From assembly GCA_964188305.1 (NCBI GenBank), contig OZ076885.1: DNA of 64,000 nucleotides. One strand, 5' to 3'. Of this stretch, positions 17,841 to 43,812 are shown piece after piece. Made by a program: the position numbers and the translations under genes. Position 1 is the stretch's first letter; the number at the start of each line of letters is the position of its first letter. This DNA comes from Podarcis bocagei (Eukaryota). Under the pieces are notes generated by a model that was given only the letters and a program-made list of their open reading frames with translations, was not told the origin of the DNA and ran no database searches.

Positions 17841-17928
17841 CTGCATTCATCTCCAGCAGCACAGGCCTGAGGCGTGATGACCACGTTGCTCTCTACAAGT
17901 GATATGGCCTGGAGAACAGGAGCTTTTC
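17841..17928 (-). CDS. MYRF: MYRF exon 23
   Basis: GKAPVLQAISLVESNVVITPQACAAGDEC; 88 nt. Confidence 0.88.
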
Positions 17929-19226: not shown

Positions 19227-19675
19227 CTGTAGGAATAATAATAATGAAAAAATACCAGCACCAGTTCTATGTAGGTCAGAGTAAAATGGCAAAGAGACAG
19301 AGCAAGACACAACAACCTCCTGCATTGTAAGGCCTAGTTCATGCAACCACTTTGGGACTTATTTATTTCAATATGGGTCTTCTGCATGCACATGGACTGA
19401 GTTTGTCCATTAGCAGAGGGCATGTATTACATTGGCCCTCACCATTAATAGTGAGCAGAAGCTGCCCATGATGTGTAGTGCTGATTTTCTTTGAAAATGC
19501 AGCTTACTGCAGTAGGGCGACAGCTGCTTCTTGGGTGAAATGGCAGATCAACCTGCCCATCATGTGAACACACAAGAGGACCAGCCACGTTCCCCACAGC
19601 TGACTTTCCAGCTGAACACCTGACTGGCTTAGCCTGGGAGACGTTCTCACAGAGACAGCCACAACTGGTACCTAC

Positions 19676-19764
19676 CATGCTGTTTAAGGGAAGCATCATC
19701 AGGTGTGTTTGATGAGGCAGCAGTAGAAAACATAATCTGATTCTTATCAATGTTCTGACTGGAC
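19676..19764 (-). CDS. MYRF: MYRF exon 20
   Basis: SSQNIDKNQIMFSTAASSNTPDDASLKQH; 89 nt; phases 2-1 fit both neighbours. Confidence 0.8.
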
Positions 19765-21013
19765 CTAGAATGCAAGGGGGAGGGGAGATGTCACTTGAAG
19801 TCTTTACATATATATAGAAAAAATGGTATGTGTGCTAACAGAAAGAGATGGATTAATGAGGCAGCTGAACATCAAGGTTTGGAACGGAAGGGTGCAAACA
19901 GACTGTAGAAAGGAGGACAGGGAGGGGGAAAGCAAGACAGAAAGCAGGATGGGAAAAGGAGGACACCCTGACAAAGTGTCAATGGGTGAACAGATCAGGC
20001 AAAGCCTAAAATTGCTTCCAGGTATCCATTACAACCCTCCCGTCTCGACAGTCTACTCCAGGGATGGCAAATGCCAAAGGTGAGACGGAAAGAGAAGTTC
20101 AGAATCTGACAAATGGCTTCTGACCAGGGCCCTGATCTCTCTCAAGTCCATATTAATTGAAGAAGCACTATTTCCACTTGATGTGCCTATAGATGTCACC
20201 CCCCCCCCCACAGCTGTATCTATATGAAGTTGTAAACTGCATTCTGCAAGCGCAGAAATTCTTCCATCCACAACCTGAGGACTTATTCCCTATGCTGATG
20301 CACAGGAAAGAAAGCCTCAGGCCTTTCTTTTCCCTCACTGGTGAAGCAGGTTAGCTATCTGCTGCAGTGCTGGCTGCTATGTAGACTTCATGCTGTGAGA
20401 GTTCTGGGCAACAGCAGCAACAACAAAATTGTTTCCAGGGTGAGGGTGGGGTTGGGAAATGCCATTCAATTCCAATGAAATTTGAAAAGTGGGCTTACTT
20501 CTGATGAAACATGGTTAGGATGTAGATGTAGAAGAAAGGGCTTCTTCACCCAGCCCAGAGCTACACTCTGAAATCCATTACCAAAAGATGTAGTGACAGC
20601 CACCAACTTGCATGCTTTTAAAGGGGGATTAGACACATTTGTGGGGGATATCAGTGGCTATGTGCTACCTTCAGTGTCAGAGACAGTTGCTGGGTACCAC
20701 AAGTGTGGGAGTGCTGTTGCACTCAGGTCCTGCCTGTGGCACTTCTACTAGTTAGGCATCTGGTTAGCCCCTGTGAGAACCAAATGCTGGACTAGATAGG
20801 TCTTCCACTTGCTCCAGCTGAGCTCTTACATTCTCTCTCTCTGTCTGTCTGTCTCCCTGCTCTGTTTAGGAGGAGGAGTACTAAAATATAGGCAGCTTTA
20901 AAAAGAAAAAGAAAAACACAGAAGATGAAGAGTGGGTGGCATGGAAACACAAGTCATCATCAGAAAGGATGCAGCATTTACATCAACAGTATACAGAAAA
21001 AGAAGGACCATAC

Positions 21014-21094
21014 CGTGGACACAGGGCAACTGGGATGCCAGGACCTCTGTGCCGAAAGAGAGCCAGGAGGCAAGTGGTCGGCACAGCAAAAGAA
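21014..21094 (-). CDS. MYRF: MYRF exon 19 (symmetric, skippable)
   Basis: SFAVPTTCLLALFRHRGPGIPVALCP; 81 nt, phase 2-2; resembles the mammalian SFAVSTSCLLALL segment as I recall it. Confidence 0.88.
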
Positions 21095-22387
21095 CTGCAA
21101 GGCAACAGGAAAACAAAGGGGGGAGGGATGAAAGGCACAGACAACAAAAGTCACAAGGAGGGGTGATTTGGATGAGGAGGAAGGGTGGGCAGAGAAAAGA
21201 GGTGGGGAGAGAAATAAATGGAAAGAAAGGAAAACAAGTAGAAAAGGGAAAGAGAAAGATCAATCAATTATTTAGGAATAAGTATTCCTACAGTGGTGTG
21301 AACCATCTAAAACTTCTGAGTATGCACAGACAAAGAAGCTTGGAATGCTTATTCCCTATGGGCCGATTTCAATGCCATGCTATGGTGAATGTCCAGTCAT
21401 CGCAATCACTGCAGCTTGTCGGACAGAACAATCCCCTTCTCCTCCTTTAGCACTGTTCTGGGGGGTTCTCCCAATCCCCCCAGAGCCAGTTTTGGGGGTC
21501 CAGCCAACCTTGTTGTGCAAGCAGACACCCTCACATAAGGCTTGTGCTGATGGGACTCACTGGTGAATCCCACCCCAAGACTCTGACCTTCAGTTACTGT
21601 AAATTAGCCAACACATATTTGGAGTCATGCATCTCTATATATTTCTGTATTTCTGTGTATTCACCATGCAGATCTGGCATAGAATCTGACTTCCTGGGAA
21701 TCCCTCAATTCATGCCAGTAAGTTGTGGTTATGGGAGAGCCAGTGCCATTTAGTGGATAGAGTGTCAGACTAGGACCTGGGAGACCAGGGTTCAAATGTC
21801 CACTCAGCCAGAAAACTCATTGGGGGTTCTCCCCACCCTCCCAAGTGGATCTTGAGGGGCATGGGGGAGTGCAAGCGGGGAAAAGTCTCATTGCACTGCT
21901 GGGGGGTCCTTGCCCTGGCTTCTGTTAGTAGAATGGGGTAGCTGAAACCAGTCCTAAATAAAGAGATTTCCCTTAGGGACAATAAATAAAGAAATTCCCT
22001 CTGGGGCCACATCCATAAATCACAATAAATAAAAAATTTCCTCAGGGACTATATTTCCAAGAAACAGCTTTGATGTATTCCGTTTCACTCATCTCCTGGG
22101 CAGTGTTTATTATAAGGTGCTCCTTTTCTTTACCAAGCTGACAGCCCCAAACCCCAGCTGTATTAGAGATTCTTTAAGACACCCTCCCCCCTCTAGATAA
22201 CATATCTGGTCTTCTCAACACCTTCTTACACTCTTTTCCATATCTGATTTTCTAGCGCTCTTCTGGTTTGAAGGTTTCTTTCATGATTGTGCGCTTTCCT
22301 ACTTAGGGTTTCGAAAGGAAGATGCATTTCCTTCTGAGGAAGCAAGTAACCAAAGGAGGAATGGGGGCAGCAAAAGGAGCTACATAC

Positions 22388-22456
22388 CCTTCTATATCCA
22401 CAACGTCTTCCTCATTGCGGTAGCTCAGCACATAGAGGGTAGACATGGATATCACG
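22388..22456 (-). CDS. MYRF: MYRF exon 18
   Basis: SVISMSTLYVLSYRNEEDVVDIEG; 69 nt; donor gtatgt. Confidence 0.92.
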
Positions 22457-23377
22457 CTGCGAAAGAGAAGAGAAACGGAGCCTTTGGAAACATAAACTTT
22501 CAATATTTCAGGGAGGAAAAGGAAGTTGCCTCCAAACAGGTCAGCCTTTGTGTGTATGATTAACTCAAGTCCAGGGAAATCTTTACTCCACAGGACATCA
22601 AAGAGTACATATACTCAGTGGCATACCTCGCCAACTCAGTTTGAAAGTAAAATATGGTTAGAAAGGGCACTTGCCTAAGAACAACCACCCAGAAGTGCAA
22701 TTTGATTTGAAATCATATTTATTACAAGTGGACTCTGGTAGCCAGGAATCCATAGTAAAAAACAAAACAAAACAAAAAACAATACCAGGAAACACATCAG
22801 ATCAGTTTCTGCATGACATCCCATGGCTGCCTATCTAACATACAGGATTTGCCAACTAAAAGAGGAGACACCAGAACTCCAAATTTCCAACAAAGCCGCT
22901 TTCTAGTCTTAAAAAAAAACCAAAAACAGGTTTCTAGTTCTCCTTATTGCTGCGATTATTTTGGAAAATGTGGTGGCAAACCTCACCCCCTGAAAAGGTG
23001 GGAGGAGGGAGGGAAAATAAATTTTAAAAGTCCAGGTTCTTCAACTTTACTGCAAAGTGATTCACTTAATTTTCTTCTGATTTCAGGACAATAACTGTAG
23101 TTGCCATCAGTGCAGTTGTAGCAACCAGCAATACACTGGACAGGCTCAGCCGTGTTCATGAAAATTATATCCACACATTTGTCACATGCAACCTAAAATA
23201 GGTGGATTTTATGACTGAGGTACATTTCACTGTGATTCTATGGCAACAATCAAGAGACAAGAGCACAGTGCTAAGAAGAAAGCACTCATCGCTTCACCTT
23301 CATTTGGGATGAAACTGGCCCACCCCTAGATAAGCATAACCAGATAAGCATTCACTCACAGGCCAGAACCCCCCCCT

Positions 23378-23640
23378 AACAACAACAACAACAACAACAA
23401 CAATATTAATTTATTACTTATACCCCACTCATCTGGCTGGGCCTCCCCAGCCACTCTGGGCAGCTTCCAATAGGATATTAAAAACACAACAAAACATCAA
23501 ACATTAAAAACTTCCCTAAACAAGGCTGCCTTCAGGTGTCTTCTAAAAGTCAGATAGTTGTTCATTGCCTTGACATCTGGTGGGAGGGCATTCCACAGGG
23601 CGGGCACCACTATCAAGAAGGCCCTCTTCCTGGTTCAAAT
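23378..23640 (-). mobile_element. L2-clade LINE 3' fragment
   Basis: Reverse-complement match to 9895-10128, with an (AAC)n-derived tail. Confidence 0.78.
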
Positions 23641-23702
23641 TCTCAGTTCTGTGCACCACTCATCTGCTGAGTGTGAAATAGCCCAGGTGTGCAGACACCA
23701 AC

Positions 23703-23791
23703 CTGAATGCCATGATGATCACCAGGGCAATGATGGTGCCTTGAAGGAAACGTTGGCTGATGCACGCTTGGTCCGTGACCACAGAAGGGGA
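23703..23791 (-). CDS. MYRF: MYRF exon 17 (start of TM helix)
   Basis: [29 protein letters not shown]; 89 nt. Confidence 0.94.
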
Positions 23792-24509
23792 CTGCACAAG
23801 ACAAAGGGGAGGGAAAGAGAACCACCAGAAATTTCATCAGAAAGTTATCCCTGTATTCCTGTTCTGATCTTTCTGTGTCGTTCTTTTGGGGATAGCAGGC
23901 TGTAATGTGCCCCTTCCTCACTGACCCTCACCCACCCTCCCCAAGAAAGAGCCAAGATGTCTGAGGAGGCTTTGGTACCACATTTCAGAAGGCTACTAAA
24001 TAAAGGAAATAAAGGAGAACCCTGAGTTGGTGAAGGAATTATGAAATGCAATGAAAATGCAGACTTTTTGAAGAGGAAACAGAACACAAATTATTCACAA
24101 GGGAAGGTTGCTGGATGAAGCAGGAATGCAAGAGTCAGCTCAGACACCAGGAAATCAGATCAAGGAATGCATCATGTATACAAAAATAGTTCTCAGCCCA
24201 CAGAGACCATAAATATCACTGTGCAAGCGTTTTCAATTTGTATGTGCTAACGTTCACCCAACACCTTAACAAGCAGCCTCAGCGAACACAACTTGGCTTG
24301 TGGGACTCAAAGGCAAACATTCGATTCCATCTGCACACCATGATGGTGAGGTGCTGCACAATCAAGAGCCCCAAACCCAGCCTACAGAATCAGCAGCTGC
24401 GTCTTCTTTCAAGTGACAGAACCAGCTTCAACAACACAAATGTGCCTCATGCACATGAGCAATCACAGCTCATATTACAACATGTGTCTCCCTTACAAAG
24501 GCTTCTTAC

Positions 24510-24582
24510 CTTGCTGGACATTTTGGGGGGCCTCTTTTTGTGTGGCACACTTCCTGCACGGCTGAACTGACTCCCTGCTTGG
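24510..24582 (-). CDS. MYRF: MYRF exon 16
   Basis: [24 protein letters not shown]; 73 nt. Confidence 0.94.
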
Positions 24583-25516
24583 CTACAATGAAAGGAAAGT
24601 TAGGATGCACCCAGATCAGCACTCCTTATCATATTTAATTTCACTTCATTCTGCTCCTCCTCCCTCTCCCACTACCAATCTGTTTCTTAACAAACACTCT
24701 GTTTTCATAATTTTAGCACGTATACGCACGGACCACAATGAATTTGGTGCCGCTTTCTGGAGAATGGGGCGATAACCCAATATAGGATTGTGAAGTAGTC
24801 AATATTTGTTTTTTGCCAAGGAATAGGTATCTAGCTGGTTCACAGGCATAAACTCAACACAGGTGGGAGGGAATAAGGTGCAGCGAAGGGGTCCTTATAT
24901 GAAGGAGAATGTCAGGGTGCTACCAGAGAGGGGTTTAATTAGCAAATGGGTCATTCACAACAGTTTGGGTTTTGTTTTGTTTTTAAACTTACTGGGTGTC
25001 TAGTGAAGGTTTCTACTACTTTCACTATTCCTCTTTGAAAACAGAGTATTCTCTGAAACAGATTTTTAAACTGGGACTTTTAGATGCAGATTTACAGGAA
25101 AGTCATCTTTAGAGAGTATAGATGCTTGCTCTATCTGAAGATCTTATTCCTGTGGGAGAGGAGTAGGTAGACAGAGTCTTCTGAATCACTGGGACACTCT
25201 CTGTTCAGAGGCCCAAACTGAATACTTCTTCTGGGACCATGACCTCATAAGAGGCAGGAGAAGGGATCACAATATTTGCCCTCCCGTTAGAAGAGGCGTC
25301 AGTGGAGGAACAAGTTTTTTAGCCTGAGTACGTATCTGAGCATACTTCAAAGTTATTTTTGCTTTTCTACCAATGCAATCTTATGCTTACTTACTCAGAT
25401 GTTCAACTGTGTGGAACGTTATTTATTCCTAAAAGTGTGTATATCATTGCAGCCTGCGTAACAACCCATTTACTCAGAGCTGTATTGTTTAAAATACTCT
25501 AACTGAAAAGAAGTTA

Positions 25517-25738
<222 letters not shown>

Positions 25739-26408
25739 CTAGCATGGACAAAATAAACACTCTCTTTGGGTGTGCTCAGGTCCTCACATTATGCCCTTAG
25801 TTTTTGGTGATTTACAATCATTCCCTACCCTCAACACACACACACCCACTGCCGCCACCCGGCTCCTTCCATGCAAAGGCAAGAGCACCTCCACCTCAGA
25901 AAGATTGCTCTTTGATGCCTATAATCTACTTATCACACAGTTAACAGACCAATTTTATGCCTGTTTCCTCAGAAAAAAAATCCATCAATGGGGTTTCCTC
26001 CCAAGAAAACCTACATAGGATTTCTGCCTTAGATGACTTTGCCCCTAGATACTTATCACCCCCCTGTGTCTCCCGCCAGAATGGTCATCAGAGGGCTGCC
26101 TTCTGGGAGTGCTCTGTGTGCCTGAGGGTCTGGGTCTGTGTGTCCGTTTGAGGGCAAGGAAAGAAGCATTTTCAGTTCTTGCTCCCCAGCTTCAAATTTT
26201 TCTTCCAGAGTGGCCTCCAAACCCTGAACAAATATCTCTCAATTTCTCTCTCTCTCTCTCTCTCTCTCTCCCCCCGCCCCAATTTCAGCTTTGGCTTGGG
26301 TTTTGCTAAAAATATATAGAGTGGGAAATGATGCCCGAAGAGTCTGTCATTCCTATCAAACTTGTTTTCTGTTTGTTGCTTGCCTCCTCTTCTAAGGGCT
26401 CCACTCAC

Positions 26409-26518
26409 CTTATTCACCACTAGGAAGTTCTCTACAGTCCTCCCACTGGTAAAGACCATGTCCCCAGTATCTTTCACTGCTTCTGGGAGAATCTCCCTCA
26501 CCTCCTGAGCAATGACAC
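26409..26518 (-). CDS. MYRF: MYRF exon 14 (ICA domain)
   Basis: [37 protein letters not shown]; 110 nt. Confidence 0.96.
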
Positions 26519-27615
26519 CTGAACAGAAATGGGAAGCATGCATCACAGTAGCTCTGGGCCACAAAATATAAATGCAACCTTAGAATCCCAGAGGCACCTG
26601 CTAGGATCAGGTATGAGGGAGTTTGGACCAATGCTAGTAGGGGACTCTGTGACGCACATACCTCCAGCTATATACTGTTTATATAAAATATGCTGCAGGA
26701 GAAAACAACTCGAATGTAGCCTGTGGGAGGGTAGAAATAAGCAAGTAACTAAGGATAGCTTCGCAATTTATAAAGCAAATATGTGTTCCCAGGCAGGAGG
26801 ATTTATGTCAGCCTCTGCTAACCTGGCAGCCGTCAGATGTTTTTCACCACAGCTCCCATCAGTCATACCCATCATGGCCACACTGGCTGGAGATGGTTGG
26901 AGTTGTAGCTCAAAACATCTGGAGGGCGCTAGGTTGGGGAAGGCTGCTTTATTTGTCTGCTGCAGAAAACCTCCCTGCAGCCTCCCTGAGTGAAGACTGA
27001 TAATCAGGGCATACGTAAATCTGTTGGTGGGGCTTAAATAATTAAATTGTTTCTCCATGCAAAAGGAATACCTGCACACAGAAAGCTAGCATCCGGAAGA
27101 GACATGTGCTACTTCAGTGGTCATTATCCAGTTCAGACCTGAGATCCGCCTTTGTACTTTGTGAGACCCATTTCTTGATTTTTACCATAGATGTGTTCAA
27201 GCATTGCAGGGGGTTTGACAAGAGGGAGCCTCAGGATCCTCCCAACTCTACAATTCTATGATTCTATGAATGACAAAGACTGAGAAAGACCACAGCATTT
27301 CCCCCAAGCCCTGCAATACTGGGGACTTTCACTAACTGTAACCTCGAAGTAGAGTGTCATATATGTATAACATCAGAACCAATGATCAGATGACACATGC
27401 CGTATACATACAATTTAGTATGCCTAAGGGATGTTTCACAGAAGGACAGGAAAACGCTATTATTAAGGTCCCAAGTGCAGGCCAACAGTGGGTATATGTT
27501 AGATCATGGATATCCTGATTTGGGTGAAGGTGGATGTTGACACTTTTGCTAGCATTAAAACTCCTGAACAGCACAGGTGCAAGGATGAAGCTCGGGGTCA
27601 GTGAAAGGACTGTAC

Positions 27616-27724
27616 CTGTCTCTGATGTGTTCTCCAGGCCTACGGTGGCAGCAAACTCTGGCTTGTAGTTATAGTGCACCAGTCGCATACGGGAGATTCT
27701 CTTCAGCTGTTCTGTGGTATCCAC
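27616..27724 (-). CDS. MYRF: MYRF exon 13 (ICA domain)
   Basis: [36 protein letters not shown]; 109 nt. Confidence 0.96.
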
Positions 27725-27790
27725 CTGAAACCATAAGACCCACAATAATGACCTTGGTCTGCATTTCCTAAGCAGAGATCCTACTGACTA

Positions 27791-28015
<225 letters not shown>

Positions 28016-30347
28016 CTAAGAAAAGAAAAGAAAAGAGGGGAGAGATGCCCATAGGACATTAATGTCAACAACACAGAACTGCAGAGAGAAACAAAGTTAT
28101 TGGGGAGAAAAAACTGCTGTTTTTAGAATAAGACCAATGCAGAACAGTCGCCTCCCCTCTTCCTAAATGCAGGGGGAAATTCTTTTGCGCAAGTTAACTG
28201 ATTTGAATCATTGAAAACAAAAATGTTGCCCACCAACCAATATTGAAGCTGGGCAAGAGAAATAAGCAAATGAGTCAGCCAGGCACAGAATAACAAACCA
28301 CCAGAGCAATTGAAATCATGCAGAGTGGCAAGTCTTTGATAAGGGCCCTCCACAGTGTTTAGTGGCCCAACACCTCTGCAAGTATTTTGCACACTACACC
28401 TTATAGGCAACTCAGTGCACATTTTTGCAGTCAGATGAAATGCAAGTTGCTTTGCAGAGTATTTTGGGAATTCCAGTTTCATTTTTTCAAGTTTTATGAC
28501 CATCAGCATGGATAAGAACACACTGCTTTTTGTCCATGTTTGGAGACAGCGACACAGCCTCCAAGAAAACTTACTTTGCAGCGTAGTTAGACAAAATGCA
28601 CAACAGTAAGTTGTTTACAGCTTGCGGAAGGCTGTCTGGTTCACTTTGCAAGCTAAGCACAAGGAGCCTTGGTTCTGAGTCAGTGTGTGTTTACAGACCT
28701 GCTGAGATAAATGCCCTTTTCCAGCCCACAACGGATAAAGATAAAGTTGCAAGCTTTTCTCTCTCAGCAGGAGGGGTGTGTGGGAATTCTAGCTATGAGG
28801 CAAAGCATCACCATTGCAAAACAAATCCCCAAGGGATTGTTAAGGAAGTGACAGGGTGGCTTGCATGAGGGTTGTGATGGTGATGATAAATGTGCGATAA
28901 GCTAATTGGCAAAGCCAGCACCAGAGTGACAGGAGAGAACAGGAGGATCAAACATCTCAGATGGTGCTTATTTTCTCAATATGTTCCTGGGGCTTAAGCT
29001 TGCCGAGTCTGGAAGCCCCTGGCCCCTATTCCCAAATGTAGTAAGGGCAGATTGTGGCTTCTCAGGAAAAGGACCTTTTGCACATGGGTCAAGTCCAAGA
29101 AACAGCACTATTTGATGTAGGGGCTCAATGGCTCAGGTTTCCATGTGATGCCAAGCCAAACCACGGCTTACTGCAAATGTGTGGATTCCTGGAGAGGAGA
29201 TCATAAGTGCTTTGCTCCTCCACTGCCCTTGCTCCTGACTGCTTAGCATATTGTCTATGGAGACAAACTAGGAGCCCAGGTCCTGACAAGGGCTTGACCA
29301 AACCATGGCTGAAAACAGAGCAGTGCAGCAGCAGCAGGACTGGAGAAGGAGAACAGCAGCAGCAGCAGCAGCAGCAATATCCTCCCTGGGAACACACGTT
29401 CATGCTAAATCACAATTTGGCTTGGTATTGCATGCATACTGGGTCAATAAAAATTGCACAGAAACACAGTTTTGCATCTGATACGAATTGGGCTTCAGCA
29501 GCTAATTTCATGTAGCTCTTTCTAGGCACCAATGTTCCTATCTGATTCATTCTGCTCATTGTTCGTGCTTTACACAAACACCCCTCTGCAAACACTCCTA
29601 TGCATCCTTCTTTATCACTATTTCATGCAGTTCAGAGCTGCACTTTCACAATGCAAGTCTGTTCCAAAGCTGAACCTGGGGGTTTAGTTATTCTCAAACT
29701 CTGACCACCTTTCCCTCACATGTTCCCCTCAAAATTCTTGGCATTATGGACATAAGAGGAGAGACAGTCACTGTGATGCTATCCAGAGTTCAGAAAGTTT
29801 AGAAAGTGGGAGAAGCACAGTCACAGGAATGAGGAATTTTAACCAGCTAGGTACAGAAGTATAATTTCACTCCTTGTGTTCAATGGGAGTGTTATCTGAC
29901 ATAGTACTTTCCTATTTAACCATTACCTCTGCATGAAAGTACACAAAAACCCATTGTAGTCATGCTGCCGTTTGGCCAAGCCTCCGTGGACTGGGCAGGT
30001 ATTGTGTATTCTGTACAAAAAGCCAAGGTTTTTTAACAAAAACATTTGCTTTTGTACATTTGCACAGAACACACAATGGAAGCAGATTCCAGCATCTCAA
30101 GACTCTCAGGAGGTCTCTTTCTCCTCCCGCCCAAGCTCCTACCTCTCATGGGCTTCACCAGGCACTGTCTGGTGGAATTTCCAAATCCAAGGAGAAGCTT
30201 CTGTAGGGCTTCTAGTGGCAAGGGCTTCAGTGTCCCTCAGAGGCCTTTGCACTTCTCCATGACTATCAAAATATTTAATTCTATGCAAATTTACCATTTG
30301 CAAAAGTTCAGAGCTAAAAAACGTACACACTAACACAGTTCTGGTTA

Positions 30348-30680
30348 CAGTGGTGCCTCGCAAGACGAAAAGAATCCGTTCTGTGATTCTCTTCGTCTAG
30401 CGGTTTTTTCGTCTTGCGAAGCAAGCCCATTGACGGATTAGCGGATTAGCGCTATTAGCGGCTTTTAGCAGCTTATCTGCTGATCGGATCAGCTGATAAG
30501 CGGCTTAGCGGCTTAGAAGGGGGGGGGGAGGGAAAAAACCAGCAGGAACTCGCAAGACATTGTCGTCTTGTGAAGCAAGCCCATAGGAAATTCGTTTTGC
30601 GAAGCACCTCCAAAACAGAAAACTCTTTCGTCTAGCGAGTTTTCCGTCTTGCGAGGCATTCGTCTTGCGGGGCACCACTG
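30348..30680. mobile_element. Tc1/mariner-type MITE family B
   Basis: Same TIRs and TA TSD as the 8895 copy; different core with GCGGATTA-like repeats. Confidence 0.92.
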
Positions 30681-31492
30681 TATATGTCTAAAAAGTAATA
30701 CTAAATGGAGTTTGTTTCCCGTTATTCCTCTTCTGCGATTACATGTGTTATGAGCCTTATTCTAAGTACCCTCACAACTGTTTTAATGTGATCTGTCCTG
30801 CTGAAAATTTGCTGCTCTGTTCTTTGGGCAGATCCAAATAGTCCTAGTTTCATGAATCTATTGCACTGCATCAGTGTTCCAATCAGTCCTCTTAGCCCAG
30901 GCAAGCAAGCAGCTGCAGGATGCACTTTCTCATCCTTCATATCCCACCTTAAAACCCACTTTTTCATGAAGCCCTTGGTTTAAGATCCTCAGCTGAAACA
31001 AAAGCTAGCTGCATTTGCTCACATGCATTCCTAATCCACCTCTTACAACACTGCCTTCTCACCTGCCAATGTTTAGACTAAAGCTTCTCGAGACTGTGCC
31101 CTTTTTTTTTTTTTTTTTGCTTATGAAATCCTGCAATGGGTGGTGCTGCGTAAGTACTATTATATCACATGTAGAGGAATGATATAAAAGGTGTCATAAT
31201 AAGAGTGTCAGGTTTACAGGTTTACAGAGAAGCAGCCATGGATGTGACACAGCTTCTGACATGTTCCACAAGCACTCTGGCGCTCACACCATTTTCACTG
31301 CGGATTAAGTGAGTCAGCTGTGCGTCTGATGTGCAACCAAACCACATTTCTTGTGCTAGTGCAGACAGATCCTTAGCCTCACTGACAAGACTGGGGCAAG
31401 CTCTGCTCAGGGCAGAAGCATCTCTCATCCCATTCTACAAAAGAGCCCCCCATCTCCACCCCGGAGACTGCATAGTTCAGCATGCTACTTAC

Positions 31493-31558
31493 TTGTCTGC
31501 AGACTCCGGGGTCCCCGTCCGCCCTCTGTTTGTGTTTTAACCCCGAACCGGCCCTTTG
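31493..31558 (-). CDS. MYRF: Candidate MYRF cassette exon between exons 11 and 12
   Basis: tgtgtccatttcctctag|QRAGSGLKHKQRADGDPGVCRQ|gtaagt; 66 nt, phase 0-0, no stop, 5 CpGs. Confidence 0.55.
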
Positions 31559-32466
31559 CTAGAGGAAATGGACACAGCACTTAAAAAGGCAGCAGGGCGG
31601 AGACAGCCAACCACAAAGTCACAGCCTAGTGTCCTCCTTGTTTGCAAAAGGCTCTCTGGAAGCACAGGAGCCACCCTTGACCTCTTCAAATGCCCTTCCC
31701 CCAAGATCATGCTTCCTAAAGTCCAAGAAGCCAGTCTATTTAAGATGCTTACTCAGGCATCCAACTAGCTGAACCCATTTGAGAGCATCAGTTTCAGAAC
31801 TGACGCATTGGGGCCCAAAGCAATGTCTGGTGGAGACATGGGGAAGAGTTCCTTACACATTTGTGCCCACCTAGGTGTAATTAGATGTGGCTTTCCTATA
31901 AGTCACCCTCATGTGCTCCCCAAATCCCCTTCCCATGAACCTTTAAGCATGTGTCCGCACAAGTGCAATATTGTGAGTTGGTTTAACATCTGAGCCATAT
32001 GACTTGCCCTGTGCCTTGGAGCAGGACTGCATGCTGCTGAGCAAGCTTAATGGTGGCATCCAGGCAGCAGAACAGCACAATCAATGATATGACTGCAGGG
32101 CTGGTATCTTGTTGCACCATTCCTACTTGCAACCTTGGCTTTCTCTTTCTATTGCAGAGGGTGCAAGAGCTGTCTTACATTCCATGGCCCCTGGGCACCA
32201 TTTTCAGCAATAAACCTTCCAATCCTGCCCATATCTCCTTATCGGGAACCATAAAGCAAGTGATCTCTCTTACTTGGTGTTTGCAAAGGCCTTATTTGTG
32301 CAAAGGAGAAAATGAGGATGCAGAAAGCCAGGGAGGAGTTGGATAGTGGGGTCTGCAGATGGACAAGGGGCAGCAGCAAGGGGTGCTGTGGAATCAGGGA
32401 CAGTTTGGTACCAGTGTCAAGAATTCCCCATCAAGTCAAGTCAAGAGCTGTAGGTGCTCAGAGTTA

Positions 32467-32664
<198 letters not shown>

Positions 32665-32994
32665 TCAACATGATGACAATTTTTTAAAAAAAAATCAGTA
32701 AAAAATAAACATATTATAAATTAATTACAAACTTAATCTGATGTATTGCATTCCAACAACAATATTACATTCATTGCCTTTCTTCTGTAAAAAAACCTCT
32801 GAAATAATTTGAGGCCTAGCAGCTAAAAGAAATGATGACCTATACAGATACACTTCTTTTGTTCAGCATCTGCAGCATCTGAACCACGCAGGCACAGTGC
32901 AAAGATAACCTTTCAGGATCTAGAAAGACTTATACGTACAATTAAGAAAAACATAATCAGCTGGTGATCTGTTTTAATTTTTGTGTGTATTATA

Positions 32995-33070
32995 TAGGGT
33001 TGCCATATGTCCAGAACTTCCCGGACACAGCCGTTTCTGGATTTTCACTTTTTGAAATATGGCAACCTTA
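32995..33070. mobile_element. 76-bp hAT mini-element
   Basis: TAGGGTTGCCATAT...ATATGGCAACCTTA with a perfect 8-bp TSD GTATTATA. Confidence 0.88.
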
Positions 33071-33270
33071 GTATTATAGGTGTTGTAAATGGCTTTGATA
33101 TTTTTATGAAATTATACATATAACTATATAAATAAAGGACTTTCAATGGTGATAATATTTTGCAGCAAGTTTTACCCACCATTTTTTATTCTGCGGAGGT
33201 TTTTTACTTTTTATTTCTGCTATTTTATTAATGTAAGAATGTTCACATTGCAGGGCAGCACACACATTTA

Positions 33271-33313
<43 letters not shown>
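33271..33313. repeat. (TTAG)n microsatellite
   Basis: Direct reading. Confidence 0.92.
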
Positions 33314-33367
33314 ACTTTAATTACAGATTCTTTTGTGGGGGAGGAGACAGGTAGCACACAGCCCCTA

Positions 33368-33526
<159 letters not shown>

Positions 33527-34001
33527 TCAAAGAGAAAGCATATTCTTTTACCTGGATGGGACCAACCAAAGTGCGTAAAATTGAGGATGCAAGGGATGCA
33601 TGGTGGGGAGGAAATCTGCATTCAGGCGAAGTGTTTAATACAAGAGAGCACTAAGCGCACCTAAACTCCCAGGGAAATCAGTGGCACAAGAACAGAGCTA
33701 AGCACTTAAATCCCCACCCATTTCAATGAGGCACTGCTGTGCTGCTCCTGGGTGGGAAGCTTAATATGCAGTCCCTTTTGCATTCAGGTGTCAGCACACT
33801 CAAAAAGGAGAGGTAGTGCAAGAAGCAACACCGCCTGTAGGAAGAAGATGCACCAGCAGAAGTCAGATTAATGAGCATGAGCCGCCATGTCCAAGCTACC
33901 CTTTTTAGTGCCTAATCTTCTCTGGACTGCTCACACAAAGGTGTGTGCATGTGTTAGACGTGAGGGTTTGGAGGTGGGCCCACAAATGGAAGCAGTACTC
34001 A

Positions 34002-34136
<135 letters not shown>

Positions 34137-34886
34137 TCATGCATTCCCACAAGCAGCCACCTCTTTATTTTGAAACACTGCAGATAGATTATTTGACATC
34201 CTGGTGACTGGCACTCAGTATGTGTACTGCTCTGCATTCCCTCTTCTCCAGCTGTTAAGCTTGGGAGAGGTAGGAGAGGAGCAAGTAAAAAGGGTCATTT
34301 GCTGCATCCCAATATGAAAATAACCACACAAATTTAGTAATGGAGTCACTATTATTCTACTTGCATGCAGAGGGAGTGCTCCTTTGCTTAAATTCAGATC
34401 CAGTGGCATATTGGAAGGATGCTACATTTTAAACACTGAATATGAAGTTTTAACTCTGCTGTTTTAGTAGTTATTTGATTAGATTTTCTGCTTATTGAAT
34501 TTAGTGATTGTATATTCTATTTTCATGTTTTTGTTTTAATTGCATTGTAAGGTGTCCTGGGATAAATACATTTTGCACACTCAAAATTAATTGAGTGTGG
34601 GGTTATCTGCCTTGAGGAACTCTTGAACCACTGAAGGATTACAAAAGACTGATGTTATCAAACCTCCAGTTTTGAAAGCGTCAGCTCCCACTGCAACCAC
34701 TCAGGCTGTAAGATGGCTTGGAGCTAAGACTGCACAAACACACGGCCTGACAAGTCACATACACAGCCACCTGCGCAGTAAATACACTAAGTTTTTCATA
34801 GATATGATAAGTCACATAATTGCTGGTATCAACAGAGGTTGTGCTCCACCTCTTTAACCATTGCATATTCCCATCTTCACAATTAC

Positions 34887-35082
34887 CTTTACTCCATGCA
34901 GTTTCAGATAGAAGCATTCAAGCGGCTTCAAGCCTTCGGGGGTCTTGACATACTTAGGATCTCCAATCATACCAATATAGACGGTGACCTGGAAGTGATT
35001 CTTCTTCTGGCACACAAAAGCATCATCACCCACAGAGAAGTTGAAGCCTTTATCTGCATCCACCCGGTATGTGGGCATCGGT
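34887..35082 (-). CDS. MYRF: MYRF exon 8 (NDT80 DNA-binding domain)
   Basis: [37 protein letters not shown]...YLKLHGVK; 196 nt. Confidence 0.97.
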
Positions 35083-38000
35083 CTGTCACCAAAGGGAGAA
35101 GACGTGAACATTCAATGTCAATCAAGTTATTTTCTTGCAGATACTCTCACTCCAACAGACACAAATTGCACAAGCTACTTCTTCTGCCATCTGCAAAAAT
35201 AACATTTGCCTGGAAACGATAAACATTTGGAAGGTAACCATGTATCTCTTCCCCCCCATAACACAATTTGTCAGCTTGGACATAAGGCATCACCAGCAAG
35301 CATTCTTGAAGCATGAGCCATCCTACCCAGCCCTATCCTGAAAAAGTTTAGGTTACAGGGTTGTTTATCAAAGCACCCTAAACTGTTTGGGCTCCTCTCC
35401 CAATGCAAATAACAGCTTATAGGGGACAATTTTCAGAGACAACCTGGGTAGAATCCAGAAGGCCAAACAGAGATGCTGGAGGGCCCCATGAGATTCCCTG
35501 GCCCTGCCCTACAACAATACAATGAAGTAGGATAGGTTGAGAGATAGTGGGCTGGCCCAACAGCACCTATAGAGTTGCATGGCTAAATGGGTGTGTGTGT
35601 AAATCTGGATCTCTCTGGTCCGTCCACCACTCTGTCCATCACACCACCCTGGATTTGAGGTTGTATGTTGGGGTAGGGGAATTTGTAACTAGGTTTGAAG
35701 TGAGGATGTGACAACATAAGCTAATCCCAACATGTGAGTCCCAGATTTGCTAGCTTAATAGTTTCAGAGAAAACGTCAAAGGATATTTGACAGCTACAAA
35801 CAGGCAAAAAGTTCTCTTCTCATCCTAAAATTACCACTGTCAGTTAGCATTGTTCCTTCTTCAACTAAGGGAAATGGCAATGCTCCGGGGGTGGGGGAAA
35901 GGTAAACAGTATGAAGCAAGCAGCTCTGCTTTGATTTGTTTGGTTTTCCTACAGATCTGCCAACTAACAGCTGATTAGGTTGGCATTGCTTGCTAGCTCT
36001 GGTAAAGCAATTTATGATCATCCCGAGACTTGGAAATCTCCCACCTCAACTAGATTCCACCCACCCACCCAAATTGCCACTGAAGACATTTCCCCGTGAG
36101 ATGCATCTTCCTGGCTTCAGCACAAGGCTAGGTTCATTCTGGACTGCCATACGTCTTAAAACAGAGCTACCTGAAGTTGCTCCTTACACCTTCCAAACTC
36201 TTTTTCCGCCCGCCCCCCATCTCCTCCCCAATGCCTGAAGTGTATGTACTCAGGATACAAAGCGGCAGCAGCTCAGAGTGTCAAATAAGAGGGGGGAAGC
36301 AACATATGTAGCAGCTGGGGAGGTTTAATCTATGTCTCCTTAATGGACTAGTTGTCATGGAAACACTGAAAATATGTGGCCTTCGCCAACAGGCACGCAT
36401 ACACACAGCTCCCAATACGCCTGGTTTGTTCTGTGGGGAAGGCCTCTCTGCCTCACGGACCCACAGACATACATGAACATAAACTGCAACCAAATAGGTG
36501 CAAATAAAATAAAATCAAATAAATGCTGTTGAATTCAGCAGGCCGGCATGACCGAGTTACGGTATATTTTAAGTACTTGTTGGAGGAAATGCACCCTTAA
36601 AATTTGATTTTTCTCATTTGAGAAAGAAAAAACTCCCATTAATTTCATTTGGGCTTACTTCTTTACAGGCCCAAGTGTAAGAAGAGGCTCCCTATCAAGC
36701 TGGTTAGTGACAGAGGTCCTGAAGGTCTGCACTTCCTACTATAAAAACTGAAACTTTATATTTTTAGCCACTAAGGTGTACACTTTCAATGAGTTTTTGA
36801 GGGCTCAGTTAGCACTAGAATTCAACAGAGTCTTTCTTAATCTCTGGATGCTTTGGACTACAACTCCCACCAGGGCCAGCCAGCGTTGCCATGGTGCCCA
36901 GGGCTAGTGGGAGTTGTAGTCTGTTGGGGTTGGGAAGTCTTATTTAACAGATAAATGGTATTTGCTGGTATCTTTAACTCCTTAGGCTTCAGAAAGCTGT
37001 AGAGGGGAAGACTTGAACCAAGGGGCTTGATCGTGACAGGAAAAAGGAGGGACTGTTGAAAACAGGAAGGGCTAGCAACTGTTGAAAGAGTCAAAGCTCA
37101 AAACAACCACAGTAACAAGTGGGATAGACAAGAAGAACCCAAGATGGCCAGGAATTTCAAAATCCAGTGCAGGATTCTGTGTGTGGCCATGGCAAGAAGA
37201 ACATTTCAGTAAGTTGCTTTGGCCTCCAGAGGTCCAAAGCTGGCCATGGACATGCCGACAATCCTCCACAGACATGCCAGCAGCAACTGGATAAACTCTG
37301 TTTGCTGTCAGCACCCTTGGGTTGAGCGAACCTGGCAGGCCCCATAAAGAGCCATTTAATTCTTCCTCATAGCAACAGGGGGGACCCTGAGCTGCCAGAG
37401 ATGTGCCCTGAACGAAAACCAGATGGTGGTCACAGAGTAAGCTACCTTAGCCAGAAAGTATGAGAGGAATTTCTCTCCCCCTCTCTCCCCTTTCCATCAC
37501 ATTTTTGGTGATTCATTGTGCCATTCCCTCCTTCCTACAGTGCTTGCCATTCTGCCCTATCCAAAAGCCAAATTCTTCCCCTTCCACTCCCCCCCCCCAA
37601 AAAAAGTGGACACACGGTCATTCCTCTTCAGTTCTAAGCTACATCATTCCTCCTCAGGCTCTTCAGCTAGAATAGACATGGTTTCTGTTTGCCACTGAAA
37701 TTGTACTGGGCCTCTAGCCATTCACCACTGAAACTTGAGAAGAGAACAAAACTGGCAGCTTCCGCCATTCAATCAAACCACTTTCGCTACCCAGCCCTTT
37801 ACAAATGGCTCAGCAAATCCAACACGGATCAAGGACCGCAATCTGTTCAAACGAAAGCCCATATCTTTCTTTTTACAAAACGTGTACAAATGTTTAAAAC
37901 ATGTATTGGGTCAAAATGCAGAGAAATTCAAGGACAGATAATGAAGAAATGAGTGTGAGTTATGAGGTAAAAATGAAAAGGCAAGGGCGGGAGGACAGTA

Positions 38001-41000
38001 GCAACTCAGAACTGGAGATAAGGGCAGAAAGTTAGCCACCCCCAGAAACGCAATGAGCCATGCTCCTGTCACAGGAGGGTAACAGTATGCACAGAGGCCT
38101 CTTTACGAGGCAGATGTCTACGCCCATGGCAACAGATAGCACTACGGTTTCCACAGATAAGAGAGGCATCTCACATATTATATTCCACTTTGTTTTAAAG
38201 CCAGGATCTCAAAAAAATGTCCTGTTCTTCCAAAGCACACCCTAGCCACCTTGCAAATGAGGAGAGTGTGCCTGAATATTACAATCACTGTGGCATGAAA
38301 TGCGTGACGCCCCCTTCAAAAGTCTAAGCAATTATTTAAAATGGTATCTTTCATTAAAATTATTAAATCTGAATTGTAAAAGGAGGGGGGAATTGGTGAG
38401 GAAAAGCCACCTAGTCGTAGAGTGTGCAAATCATGTGGTCTGAGTGCTTCACAACCTATTTTTCTCCATTTAGATAAACTTGGGCCACAAACGCTTACTT
38501 TCTCAGCGAAATTCAAGGATTAGTATAGGTATATTTTTTATTTAAAAAATGTTTTATTCTGCATTTATTTCTGCTGCAACAGGGAGGATTGGCGCCTCTA
38601 GTTTGTAAAAGTACAACATGGTTTTCATTGAGGGAGAGATTACCCAAGTTAATTATTATAAAAACTATTGCTTTCACCTCACTGAGAACAGGGGATGTTG
38701 CTGAACATGTGCTGCCTACAGCCCATGGAAGGTTAGTGGGAAATGGCTATGTTGAAAGCCAAGTCGTTTTTAGTTATCCTCCTCTAAGAATGCCGCCATG
38801 GTTAAAGAGCCTTGTCAAGGAAGCAGCTAGACTGGAGGCAATGAGAGAGAATTCCTTCAGCAAAATAAAGTCATGCCAAAGTGAGAACAATGAATAATAT
38901 AGTGATGGGGCGGGGGGGGGGAGAGAAACTTCTGTCTCTACTTTCTCCACACCACACGTAATTTATAAACCTCTATCCTGTCCCCTCAAAAATTATTTCT
39001 AAGTGCAGTGGCTCCATCCTTTAACGAACTGGATTTCCCTTTTCTGCACCTTCTTCTCGCTTTTTTGGAGATGAGGCAACCAGAACTTTGCATAGTATTC
39101 CAAATGCTGTACAGCTACACCATGCATTTATATAAAGGCATTACAATAACACACATGGGTAGCTTGTAGGCTGTGGGCCTTCAGTGCAACCTTGTCTTCC
39201 ACACACTGCCAAAATTATACCGGAACTCAAATGGAGTATGAGATTCAGGACACAATCCAAAGTGATTCCTTACTTGGTGCAGAGTTAAAATTACAGAATT
39301 TGCTTCCACATGTTGTGGTGATGGTCTCCAATTTAGAAGGCTGTAGAAAGGCAATAGAAAAATCCACGAAAGAGAAGGCTATCAGTGGCTGCTCCAAGAC
39401 AGCTAATGTATACTACCTCCAAGAGGAAGCATGTTCTGCTTCTTCATCTCAGAGCCTGCTTAACCGCTTATCCTGGTAGACCACAATGGGGGAAAGGATA
39501 CTGGGCGAGACATGCCTTTGGCCTCTTTGTATGTTCCTTTGGAGCAATAAATATATATATATATTTCCCCTACTCCCCTTATATATGCACAGGGAAGGAA
39601 CGCAGATAAATTACCTTCTGCGAGACCTTGAAAAGGCAGCCCTCAGCAATGATGCTGTGCGTGGGCATCCTAGGCCATGCAAGGGCAGCCTCCCTCTAAC
39701 GCCACAGCTGGCTTGAATGTAAATCACTGGCCCTTTCTCTCCACATTGCTCTCATGAAGCCAGATAATCATCTCATTTTATTTGGTACCACAGACAAGAA
39801 AGGCCCTTCCCTCTCTCCCCAAAATGGGGCCAAATAGGAGATACAGGCTGCATAGAAACCCAGGGGCGGGGCCTTCTTGAGAGTAGGCAATTCCCGGAAT
39901 CTGTCTGACTGCTTGCCAGTTCTCTATCACCTTTGTGGAATGCAGGGAGGATCTGCAGCTGTTTCTCTCCCCCACCCCTTGAACGTTTGTCTCTCCTTCA
40001 CCCTGGAAGCTGCGTTCATTTGCTTCTTGCTCTCACCTTATGTGGCTGCCATAGCTTCCCAGGCACATCTTAGCTGGTCACCAAGAGTTTGCCAGTTATC
40101 CTGCCTCTGAGCTCTCCGATTCATGCCGTTCAAGGCTCTCTTATCCATATAACAATCACAGAATTGGAGGAGAGCACAAAGGTCATCTAGCCCAACCCCC
40201 TGCAATGCAGGAATCTTTTGCCCATGATCCTGAAATTGAGAGTCTCGTGCTCTCCCAACTGAGCTATCCTGCACTGTCTTTGGGCTCAAAATCAGTGCCC
40301 AAGGCATCTTAAAACCATTAAAAACAACCTTGTTTAAAGTCCCTCCATCCCTGTCACTTTTGTTTCCTCTATCTCTCATGCTTCCCACGTCTAACAATCT
40401 TTGCTTGATTACATTCCCCGTGTCCCTGCCAAACCCTTTTTCAATGCCACTTCTAGCTGCTCTTTTCTTACCATTCACTCTATCCACGTTCCTGCCCCTC
40501 CAATCTCTGTCCCTCTCTCTAGCACATTTCCTCTGTGAATCCCACCTCTCCTCCCAGTCAAACCAAGCTATACATAGGTGGAAAAAGTTATTGTTGTGGC
40601 CACAGAGCTGGGCCCTGCTACCATTCCCAGAAATCATTCCAAGCCCACTTTTTGGGATGTGTAATCTAAAATGTACATTGGTGAAGCTGTTCTGATGAAG
40701 ATAGGCAACTATATTTGCATGCATTGGCCACTCCTGGTTACCAGTGTCTCCTCCTCTCTCTTTATTGACTTTCCACCATTACAATTCTCACCTAGATTCA
40801 GACTGTAAGCTCCTCAAGGTAAGAGCTTATGGGTGGCATCCAATGGTGTCCTGTTGGCTTCCCATGAGCATCTGGTTGGCCACTGTGAGAACAGGGCGCC
40901 AGACTAGATGGGCCACATTTTTATGTTCTTATTTTGTCTGCCCACTTCCAGTTTATTTTATCTCCAGCCCTCTGGTGTAGATTTTGGGGCTGTGTGATGG

Positions 41001-41697
41001 ACTGCAAAGGGGGTGGGGTGGAAGGAGGAGCCCCACTGCAGGAGCGGGCACCTGCTTGTGCCACATAGGACTCTCCCCTGGGTAATTGGCTTATGTTAGC
41101 CTACAAAATGCCATGCATACACTTGCTGACCATCATCATTCAGCATAACATGGCTTTAGCTAAGAGATGCTGCCTTTATCTTTAAGTAGTCTAGACTAGA
41201 CTAAACCCCAACAGATATTAGACCAATGAAAAGATATCACACCACTTTGTATGCTTCTTTCATATTCATCTTTGATGCACGCATCATGGTTATTAGTTCC
41301 TTCCTTAAACTTCTGATTGCCTTTGCTTTGCCAGTGCACTCCAACCTGTTTGCTACTTTCTCTGTGTACTCCTTTTCACCTTATCATTTATCTGTTTGGA
41401 AAAGGTATATGCTCTCTCCATTATCAGTCAGTTTCCCAAGCCTACATTTCCTCACCTATTGTTTGTTTCCATCCCTTTGTTTTGGCTTCTACAGTTAGAG
41501 TTCTTTGAATTTTGCAGTCTTCTCACTCGGGGTGTTTCCAGAAGCCAAAAGATATATTATTTTATTTTGCTGCACAAGCATCAACATGGACTGCCTTCTT
41601 AAGAGGGGTCACCTTTGCTGATGAAACCTAACTCCCCTCTCCCTAAAACTTGAGTGCCTGCTCCTGGGGAAACCACTCTTACCCTTTCCCTCTAAAC

Positions 41698-41885
41698 CAG
41701 GGGTAGTCAACCTTTCTATACCTACCACCCACTAATGCATCTTTCTTGGTGGTAAGAATTTCCTTACTGCCCACCAGTGCTCAATGGTAGGAGTGATTCA
41801 GCTTGTGCTGTAGAACCCCCTACCGCCCACCTAGAATCCTGAAATGCCCACTAGTGGGCGGTAGGGACCAGGTTGACAACCCCTG
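41698..41885. mobile_element. hAT (Charlie-like) MITE
   Basis: TIR CAGGGGTAGTCAACC / GGTTGACAACCCCTG with a perfect 8-bp TSD CTCTAAAC. Confidence 0.92.
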
Positions 41886-42563
41886 CTCTAAACAGACAAT
41901 AGGACAGCATTTTTAAAAAGGCAATTGTCAAAAGGTGTCCAGGTAATGGAGAGGCGCAAATGCTATCACTTCGTGCCACACTTCCGAAAGTATAAAAATG
42001 ACTAAAACCCAGCAATTTCTACAAAAACCAGGATGACACCTGAGGAAATGTCAACGATGCAATAATTTGAGAGAAGTGTCATTGAGATTTCAGAAATCAA
42101 TGAACAAGCGAACAGTGTTGATGGAGGAGCAAAAAGGCTAGTGTGCCTTTTCTGTTTTTTTATCAGTTGATAATACACCCATTCAAGATAGCCTTCCACA
42201 ACTGATTGTCTTGTTTCTGATTGCTGCAGTTTTATTAGTCACATCTTCCTCATTTCTTTCTTTCCCTTTCTGTGTTTTTCTGTTCCAATTGTACAGCAAT
42301 GGCTACAGAAAATGTCTTTTAAATGTACTTTGTAGAGCACCTAATAACTGTAAGTGCTTAGTAAACAATATTGAAATTTTACTATTGTTAAAATGGTTTA
42401 AAGTGGCAATTTAAAGAGGTTCAAAGTTGCGAGGCTTTTCTTGCATGCTATATACACCAGCCTCCAGCTCCTTGTGCTACTCTTGAGCAAATATGAAGGT
42501 AAATCAGCTCCATTTCTCTGAGCCGGCATGCAGAGGAGTGTACACAGGCATCATCTCTACTCA

Positions 42564-42713
<150 letters not shown>

Positions 42714-43072
42714 TTACAAAACTGTGTATTTACACCTCATGCAAATAAGCCCTCCTGCTACAAGGGAAATATTCATTCTTGTCCGACGTCCCCATGGCTT
42801 TCCCACCATGCAAAACATCCCATCTTGGTTTTTGTAACCAAGGAAAGGAAAATGTTTTTCGTTCTCTGCTCTTTTCAACTTTGGGGAACTGCCTCCACAC
42901 ATTCTGTTTGGTATGAAACAGCACATTCTCCCTAGAGACACATGGCTCACACCTTCCTCATTTCTTCCTCATGGCCCCCATTCCTCAGTTTCTCCTCCCA
43001 TGCACCCACTCTATAGAACTCTTCCCCTTTTGGAACACGGATAACATATGACAATACTACTGGAGACTGTAC

Positions 43073-43245
43073 CTGGTGAGAGCGCCCCCTGCTGATGCCA
43101 AGGAGGTGTTTGGGCTCTGTCAGGGTTGAGAGGCACAGACCCTGTCCCTGGCTCCTGCTTTATCATCCCATTAAGCATCTGGGCATTGAGAGTATTTGGG
43201 GGTGACTCTGAGTGTTTCCTCTTCTTGGCAGGGTGCACTGGAAGT
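43073..43245 (-). CDS. MYRF: MYRF exon 6 (KKRK NLS, IKQE SUMO motif)
   Basis: [33 protein letters not shown]...ALSP; 173 nt. Confidence 0.93.
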
Positions 43246-43317
43246 CTGTGGGGGCCAAACACAGAAAAGAGACAGTGAGAACATTCCAACTTCACATAAC
43301 CCATAAAAATGTAAATA

Positions 43318-43568
43318 CAGTGGTACCTCCGCTGTCAACGGGATCCGTTCCGGAACCCTGTTTGCAACCTGAAAGGAACGCAACCCGCGTCTGCGCACGC
43401 GCAGGTCGCAATTCACCGCTTCTGCGCATGCGTTTGACGTCATTTTGCACGTCTGCACATGTGCGAATGACGAAACCCAGAAGTAACCCTTTCTGGTACT
43501 TCTGGGTCGCCTCAGGACGCAACCTGAAAAGACGTAACCCGAACCGAATGTAACAAGAGGTATGACTG
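43318..43568. mobile_element. Tc1/mariner-type MITE (CpG-rich subfamily) abutting the family A copy
   Basis: TA-CAGTGGTACCTC...GAGGTATGACTG-TA. Confidence 0.85.
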
Positions 43569-43570
43569 TA

Positions 43571-43812
43571 CAGTGGTACCTCGGGTTAAGTACTTAACTC
43601 GTTCCGAAGGTCCGTTCTTAACCTGAAACTGTTCTTAACCTGAAGCACCACTTTAGCTAATGGGGCCTCCTGCTGCCGCCGCGCCACCAGAGCATGATTT
43701 CTGTTCTCATCCTGAAGCAAAGTTCTTAACCCGAGGTACTATTTCTGGGATAGCAGAGTCTGTAACCTTTAGCGTATGTAACCTGAAGCGTATGTAACCC
43801 GAGGTACTACTG
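43571..43812. mobile_element. Tc1/mariner-type MITE family A
   Basis: TIR CAGTGGTACCTCGGGTTA, TA on both sides, 242 bp. Confidence 0.92.

Follow-up and report, generated by a model that had tools for sequence, protein, structure and literature searches.

Does the long intron that separates, in the MYRF gene of a lacertid lizard, the exon closing the DNA-binding domain (DBD) from the exon starting with ASNPG host an additional exon and, if so, is this exon used, how may its inclusion be controlled, and what would it add to the protein? The question is raised by a preliminary description of a 64,000-nt stretch of Podarcis bocagei DNA (the window, here always the whole stretch), in which a 66-nt segment of the minus strand had been proposed as an in-frame exon that splits the peptide IIVR/ASNPG. 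Slashes mark splice boundaries throughout. The elements of the locus are the following:

32512..32602, minus strand: upstream constitutive MYRF exon, encoding the last beta-strand of the NDT80-type DNA-binding domain; phase 0
31559..31628, minus strand: upstream intronic flank of 70 nt, with a pyrimidine tract, the acceptor AG (31560-31559) and three conserved YGCY motifs
31493..31558, minus strand: cassette exon, alternatively spliced, 66 nt, encoding QRAGSGLKHKQRADGDPGVCRQ
31487..31492, minus strand: cassette donor GTAAGT, kept in Podarcis raffonei and Tiliqua
27815..28015, minus strand: downstream constitutive MYRF exon, covering linker, beta-helical stalk and the first part of the ICA domain (...DIQE)
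27725..27814, minus strand: 90-nt intron following the ASNPG exon; joint 27722>27813, CT..AC on the plus strand, in the RNA assemblies X1 and X2

The host gene is MYRF (myelin regulatory factor). The downstream exon matches PDB entries 5yhu and 7dc3 with E values of 1e-27 to 1e-33, and tblastn with orthologues places the coding region on the minus strand, at 59147..13633. Isolated exon peptides gave no match in a Pfam search, being too short; PF05224, PF13884, PF13887 and PF13888 are present in the orthologues that match all the MYRF exons of the window. The order of the domains is that of the MYRF class, an NDT80/PhoG DBD being followed by Peptidase_S74/ICA and then by the MRF C-terminal domains. 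The MYRF of the window is about equally distant (95-97% at the amino acid level, variable exons) from those of Podarcis raffonei, P. muralis, P. lilfordi and Zootoca.

Re-reading of the minus strand found the splicing signals and the open frame as they had been described. The upstream exon ends with ATT GTT AGA/gtaagt at 32512 (...ERIIVR, phase 0), and the downstream exon starts with GCC TCC AAC CCA GGC at 28015 (ASNPG). The cassette sits between them in phase 0-0, bounded by TAG/C at the acceptor, where the sequence runs ...gtccatttcctctAG/CAA at 31558, and by CAA/GTAAGT at the donor, after 31493. The minus strand thus reads ...gtgtccatttcctctAG/CAAAGGGCC...TGCAGACAA/GTAAGTAGCATGC, and the interval 31558-31493 translates without stops into the 22 residues given above. 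Since inclusion of these 66 nt introduces neither a stop nor a frameshift, the cassette is not a poison (NMD-inducing) exon. Equally correct was the remark that CpGs are kept in an otherwise CpG-poor intron. Five are found in the 66 nt, with an observed/expected ratio of 0.86 versus 0.24 for the intron, and they are retained because of extreme purifying selection on the cassette.

The other CpG cluster of the intron is due to a SINE-like, CpG-rich repeat located at 30316-30715, a second copy of which is found at 8887-9256. Copies of this repeat elsewhere in the window are 83-91% identical. RNA depth on the repeat is very high in all the four runs described below; rearranged joints and loose ends are numerous, and this suggests an abundant family of transcribed repeats. 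A transposon origin of the cassette was considered and rejected: the CpG-rich repeat is a separate element, and no second copy of the cassette region was found within the window.

The nucleotide sequence of the window (a lacertid) was compared with that of the skink Tiliqua, in an alignment that includes also Podarcis raffonei. Lacertid and skink cassettes are identical at 65 of 66 positions, the sole change being synonymous (GCG to GCA). The 70 nt upstream of the cassette are identical throughout (70/70), and 55 of the 60 nt downstream are conserved. The constitutive neighbours match at 81/90 and 175/201 positions (87-90%), and most of the 4.5-kb intron is unalignable between the two lizards. 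Third codon positions differ in 1 of 22 codons in the cassette versus 30 of 97 in the flanking exons (Fisher p = 0.013). The acceptor ...CCTCTAG/CAA and the donor CAA/GTAAGT are identical in the window, in Podarcis raffonei and in Tiliqua. The cassette is thus under very strong constraint, both as protein and as nucleotide sequence, and so are some 70 nt of the intron before it and some 50 nt after it; purifying selection acts here on protein and RNA alike.

Ultraconserved regulated cassette exons with conserved intronic flanks form a general class (see PMC2784930 on selection pressure at the RNA level on alternative exons). Such exons are likewise short, frame-preserving and optional, and display suppressed synonymous change and an invariant intronic flank. 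The MYRF cassette differs from them because it is found in squamates and turtles only and is not pan-vertebrate, and because it is not a poison exon. A second block of the intron, at 28494-28766, is alignable to the skink (74% over 278 nt), and a low-depth RNA contig of the X1 assembly (249 nt, depth 2.2) lies at 28582-28827. This block may be another conserved intronic element.

The proposal of an in-frame MYRF cassette exon is upheld: in at least 24 squamate species and 7 turtles, NCBI isoform models carry the same 22-residue insert, which splits IIVR/ASNPG. Most carrier species have also an annotated skip isoform, and both length and frame of the insert are kept in all carriers, be they geckos, snakes or turtles. 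Carriers were found by word searches seeded with bird and Elgaria MYRF, by a scan of the junction and by listing cluster members. A word search with the 40-aa insert region gave 14 candidates, all squamates; it covered cluster representatives only, and hence turtles were missed. According to the isoform models, the insert is carried by:

Lacertids: Podarcis raffonei, Podarcis muralis, Zootoca vivipara
Iguanians: Anolis carolinensis, Anolis sagrei, Sceloporus
Amphisbaenian: Rhineura
Geckos: Eublepharis, Paroedura, Heteronotia, Sphaerodactylus, Gekko, Euleptes
Skink: Tiliqua
Snakes: Crotalus, Notechis, Pseudonaja, Liasis, Pantherophis, Thamnophis, Erythrolamprus, Pituophis, Ahaetulla
Turtles (cryptodires and a pleurodire): Chrysemys, Gopherus, Malaclemys, Mauremys reevesii, Mauremys mutica, Pelodiscus, Emydura

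The peptide is identical in the Podarcis, Zootoca, Paroedura, Heteronotia, Gekko and Tiliqua isoforms, and features 1-3 substitutions in Anolis, snakes, Rhineura, Sceloporus and turtles. In squamates three positions only are variable (L/V7, H/L9, R/K21). The turtle insert reads QRASSG[V/L]KHK[R/Q]RADGDPGVCRQ. Its differences from the squamate peptide (G4S, L7V, Q11R) are amino acid substitutions that leave frame, length and both junctions intact. As carriers are found among both squamates and turtles, the cassette predates the split between the two.

Genomic loci were compared in Podarcis raffonei, Tiliqua scincoides, zebra finch and the rodent Psammomys. The cassette is located at L001:71390-71455 in Podarcis raffonei, where 66/66 nt are identical to the window, and at L004:30569-30634 in Tiliqua scincoides. 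No homolog of the cassette was detected, at either the protein or the DNA level, in the orthologous intron of zebra finch (816 nt) or of Psammomys (371 nt). The insert is in none of the isoforms listed for crocodilians (15), birds (>100), marsupials (15), rodents (15) and frogs (27), its absence from crocodilians and amphibians being based solely on isoform models. Protein models are likewise the basis for its absence from anguimorphs (Elgaria, Varanus) and from the single Sphenodon model. Conservation of frame or splice sites in other squamates or birds, set in the preliminary description as a touchstone for the exon, holds in squamates; turtle models keep the frame as well, and the zebra finch intron is without a homolog.

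A profile-free search with the peptide encoded by exon 12 showed that IIVR/ASNPGQFE is a direct, almost invariant junction in the MYRF family across animals. Short inserts unrelated to the cassette were noticed at the same junction in other MYRF models, namely P0274 (Geotrypetes), P0282 (Ascaphus), P0032, P0075, P0132 and P0150, the inserted peptides being FPCVPLLPLQ, VT, VTA, VIQ, AFLFQ and TLSFCQ. These result either from alternative splice-site use or from annotation read-ins, and the tolerance of the MYRF hinge to insertions may be wider.

The cassette is to be counted as already known, because it is present in public RefSeq and GenBank models of many reptiles, close relatives included. 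The reptile RefSeq/Gnomon MYRF isoforms feature the same exon at the same junction, with no difference in kind. Among the models that carry the insert are Podarcis raffonei X1/X2 (XP_053252734.1, XP_053252740.1), Zootoca vivipara X1, Anolis carolinensis X1 and Chrysemys picta X2, all of them computed. No paper describing or testing the reptile cassette was found in the literature searched (MYRF alternative splicing, reptile exon), and the exon is already annotated and functionally uncharacterised. Of interest are its lineage-restricted ultraconservation, its location at the hinge of a trimeric transcription factor, and the donor-site hairpin described below. Squamates and turtles have kept the exon for over 250 million years, and it is absent in a bird and a rodent.

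Four RNA runs were mapped on the interval 27700-32700. Two consist of raw reads (X13 and X14), and two are assembled transcriptomes, X1 from organism A and X2 from organism B, both relatives of the source with about 60% of 31-mers in common. In X13 and X14 depth is zero on every MYRF exon, the repeat at 30205-30705 alone being covered, and hence these reads are uninformative on inclusion. One contig from X1 (6711 nt, depth 24) and one from X2 (4597 nt, depth 32) each span 32511-32604 and 27813-28009. In both, the IIVR exon is joined straight to the ASNPG exon, as the two pieces lie 5 letters apart in the record, and these letters are the rest of GCCTCC. The contigs derive from RNA, since the 90-nt intron at 27725-27814 is spliced out. 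Depth is zero over 31374-31707, and no cassette inclusion was seen in the X1 and X2 contigs. In these two lacertid assemblies skipping predominates. The skip junction is found in the X1 and X2 contigs, and the inclusion junctions suggested as a check on the exon are seen in neither. Contigs lose rare variants, and minor inclusion is compatible with these data. Inclusion is suggested by gene models annotated by others and by conservation; Gnomon models can spread between species via protein alignment.

Candidate regulatory elements are found around the donor of the cassette:

31498..31512, minus strand: 5' arm of a predicted hairpin, in the last part of the cassette exon
31458..31472, minus strand: 3' arm of the predicted hairpin, intron +21 to +35, with a GGGG run pairing with CCCC in the exon
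31481..31485, minus strand: GCATG, 8 nt into the downstream intron, in two lacertids; GCACG in the skink
31446..31451, minus strand: GGGGGG, a conserved G-run some 42 nt past the donor; going by its motif only, a candidate intronic enhancer

The predicted hairpin has 14 bp (a 9+5-bp stem) and a 25-nt loop (31497-31473), in which the donor GTAAGT is contained. Its stability is -30.1 kcal/mol, with a z score of -4.5 and 0/200 shuffles as stable, for a 62-nt segment picked after viewing a larger fold. The fold of the whole 201-nt conserved core is unremarkable (z -1.0), and the local donor hairpin alone stands out. The same fold is predicted at the Podarcis raffonei (L001) and Tiliqua (L004) loci; all stem bases are invariant in the three sequences, and the hairpin is therefore without covariation support. 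Hairpins at donor sites tune the inclusion of MAPT exon 10 and, as TSL2, of SMN2 exon 7. In these, as in the cassette, a stable stem involves the 3' end of the exon and the proximal intron; unlike in these, the donor of the cassette is located in the 25-nt loop and not in the stem. Other elements, namely the three upstream YGCY and two G-runs close to +31 and +42, are conserved at the motif level only.

Taken by itself, the sequence of the cassette is suggestive and not decisive. On the minus strand of the window the cassette is the sole open, frame-preserving AG..GT pair of such strength, its donor being strong and its acceptor mediocre according to a rough PWM. The open frame runs for 37 codons beyond the donor, so that its openness is weak evidence, about 0.5 comparable decoys are expected, by estimate, in a gene of such size, and the GCATG motif occurs at chance density. 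The long open frame, the poor acceptor and the expected decoys, together with the fact that the cassette is covered by no contig or read in the four RNA runs (two of which lack any MYRF coverage), would suit a chance pseudoexon, namely an AG...GT pair of the intron whose frame is open by accident and which is never spliced in. Such a segment is at odds with the near-identity of cassette and flanks between lacertid and skink, in an intron for the most part unalignable, and with the same 22 residues, in an intact frame, in the models of so many squamates and turtles. Conservation effectively refutes the pseudoexon, which is left with next to no probability, and on these comparative grounds the exon status may be regarded as settled. 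Conservation also fits a non-coding intronic element, for example an enhancer or a splicing regulator of the neighbouring exons, which looks open and bordered by splice sites by coincidence and was put in gene models by homology-driven annotation. The substitutions distinguishing turtles from squamates, which spare frame, length and junctions, fit rather a translated exon; AG and GTAAGT are conserved; and isoforms with and without the insert have been modelled independently in many species, models from non-Gnomon pipelines included (Liasis 'isoform 8-T9'). These data make the non-coding element very unlikely, even if nucleotide conservation is above coding need (1/22 third positions changed, flanks invariant), a stable hairpin straddles the exon end and the intron, and inclusion reads were not seen in the RNA runs examined.

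A further alternative concerns the control of the exon rather than its existence. The cassette had been thought to be activated by RBFOX, and included in neurons and muscle, via GCAUG at +8 and a distal UGCAUG. Both motifs are indeed present in the window, GCATG at 31485-31481, shared by Podarcis raffonei, and TGCATG at 31027-31022, and a downstream intronic position of (U)GCAUG is the activating one for RBFOX. The proximal motif is preceded by A and not by U. GCATG is found 156 times in the window versus 148 expected, the skink GCACG belongs to the handful of changes that the conserved downstream flank displays, and the distal TGCATG falls in sequence unalignable to the skink. Of the features of RBFOX exons, a proximal downstream GCATG is found, conservation and above-chance density are not, and RBFOX control is for these reasons unsupported. 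MYRF is, besides, chiefly an oligodendrocyte, epithelial and mesothelial factor, and not a neuronal or muscle one. RBFOX-driven inclusion in neurons and muscle is accordingly held as distinctly unlikely. The conserved donor hairpin would be a better regulatory lead, a good lead and not a finding.

The preferred reading, to which a probability of about 0.85 is assigned, is that of an old, genuine and optional MYRF cassette exon, which lengthens a tether in the protein, is controlled by its flanks or hairpin and not by RBFOX, and is predominantly skipped in the two assemblies. According to this reading, the ultraconserved flanks would control inclusion, the most plausible means being the 14-bp hairpin, which places the donor in its loop. 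Inclusion would extend by 22 residues the flexible, protease-sensitive tether connecting each DBD to the triple-beta-helix stalk, the part holding the released N-terminal trimer together. A longer tether could loosen or re-space the three DBDs, and the choice of DNA sites or cooperativity would be altered; autocleavage is less likely to be affected.

The region DBD-insert-ICA was modelled by AlphaFold2 on a 42-sequence alignment. The DBD has pLDDT values of 80-96, and its final strand (187-190) corresponds exactly to IIVR. The insert and the following linker (model residues 192-226) are coil, with a pLDDT of about 30. The insert, which places 22 basic, Gly/Pro-rich residues between IIVR and ASNPGQFE, is hence predicted to follow the final strand of the DBD immediately, as a disordered coil. 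In crystallisation, a non-cleavable MyRF is reported to break between DBD and beta-helical stalk (PMC8326128), and the junction is therefore exposed and flexible. The stalk stabilises the DBD trimer (PMC8326128), and a rigid DBD trimer is hard to square with the binding of three closely spaced DNA elements (PMC5473870). Dictyostelium MrfA, an orthologue of MYRF, features a long disordered linker between DBD and stalk (PMC8326128), which according to the authors frees the DBDs relative to the trimer stalk (PMC8326128, PMC5473870). The reptile insert is likewise extra disordered sequence at the DBD-stalk hinge; in contrast to the MrfA linker, which is constitutive and unrelated in sequence, it is 22 aa long, optional and splice-switched.

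The preliminary description had envisaged that the insert might tune DNA binding, trimer geometry or self-cleavage. Effects on DNA binding and trimer geometry are plausible, since the insert extends the DBD-stalk linker by a disordered stretch. Self-cleavage is less likely to be affected, as MYRF autocleavage is reported not to depend on the DBD trimer (PMC5473870). On the basis of the model, the insert would most likely act as a longer DBD-stalk tether. As the hinge junction is almost invariant in metazoan MYRFs, the insert might equally disrupt, resulting in a weaker or dominant-modulating isoform, and a partly disabling or modulating isoform is equally open. Sites of modification or contact might be, speculatively, the conserved RxxS (Ser5), the invariant Cys20 and the KHKQR patch.

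MYRF is a homotrimer in which a short stalk keeps the DBDs together, and the manner in which three DBDs bind to DNA sites is a structural question still open (PMC5473870). A natural, strongly selected reptile splice variant that adds 22 residues to the tether would provide a ready test of linker length versus DNA binding.

A more adventurous scenario sees in the cassette an ancestral sauropsid switch at the MYRF hinge, kept in ectothermic squamates and turtles, lost in birds and lacking in mammals, with the hairpin sensing, through RNA structure, a cue such as temperature. Were this true, the hairpin would set the amount of long-tether MYRF, re-tuning trimer-DNA geometry and target choice, and a structure-gated splicing switch would act on the architecture of a trimeric transcription factor. 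Crocodilian and frog models are without the cassette, which counts against such a switch, and the scenario is regarded as most improbable.

Beyond MYRF, an open frame on the minus strand (329-3) at the edge of the window resembles the first coding exon of FEN1. MYRF and FEN1 are neighbours in the same orientation in mammals, and the arrangement would hold here if the frame is FEN1. GC-rich open frames found at about 1500-2650 suggest a CpG-island promoter.
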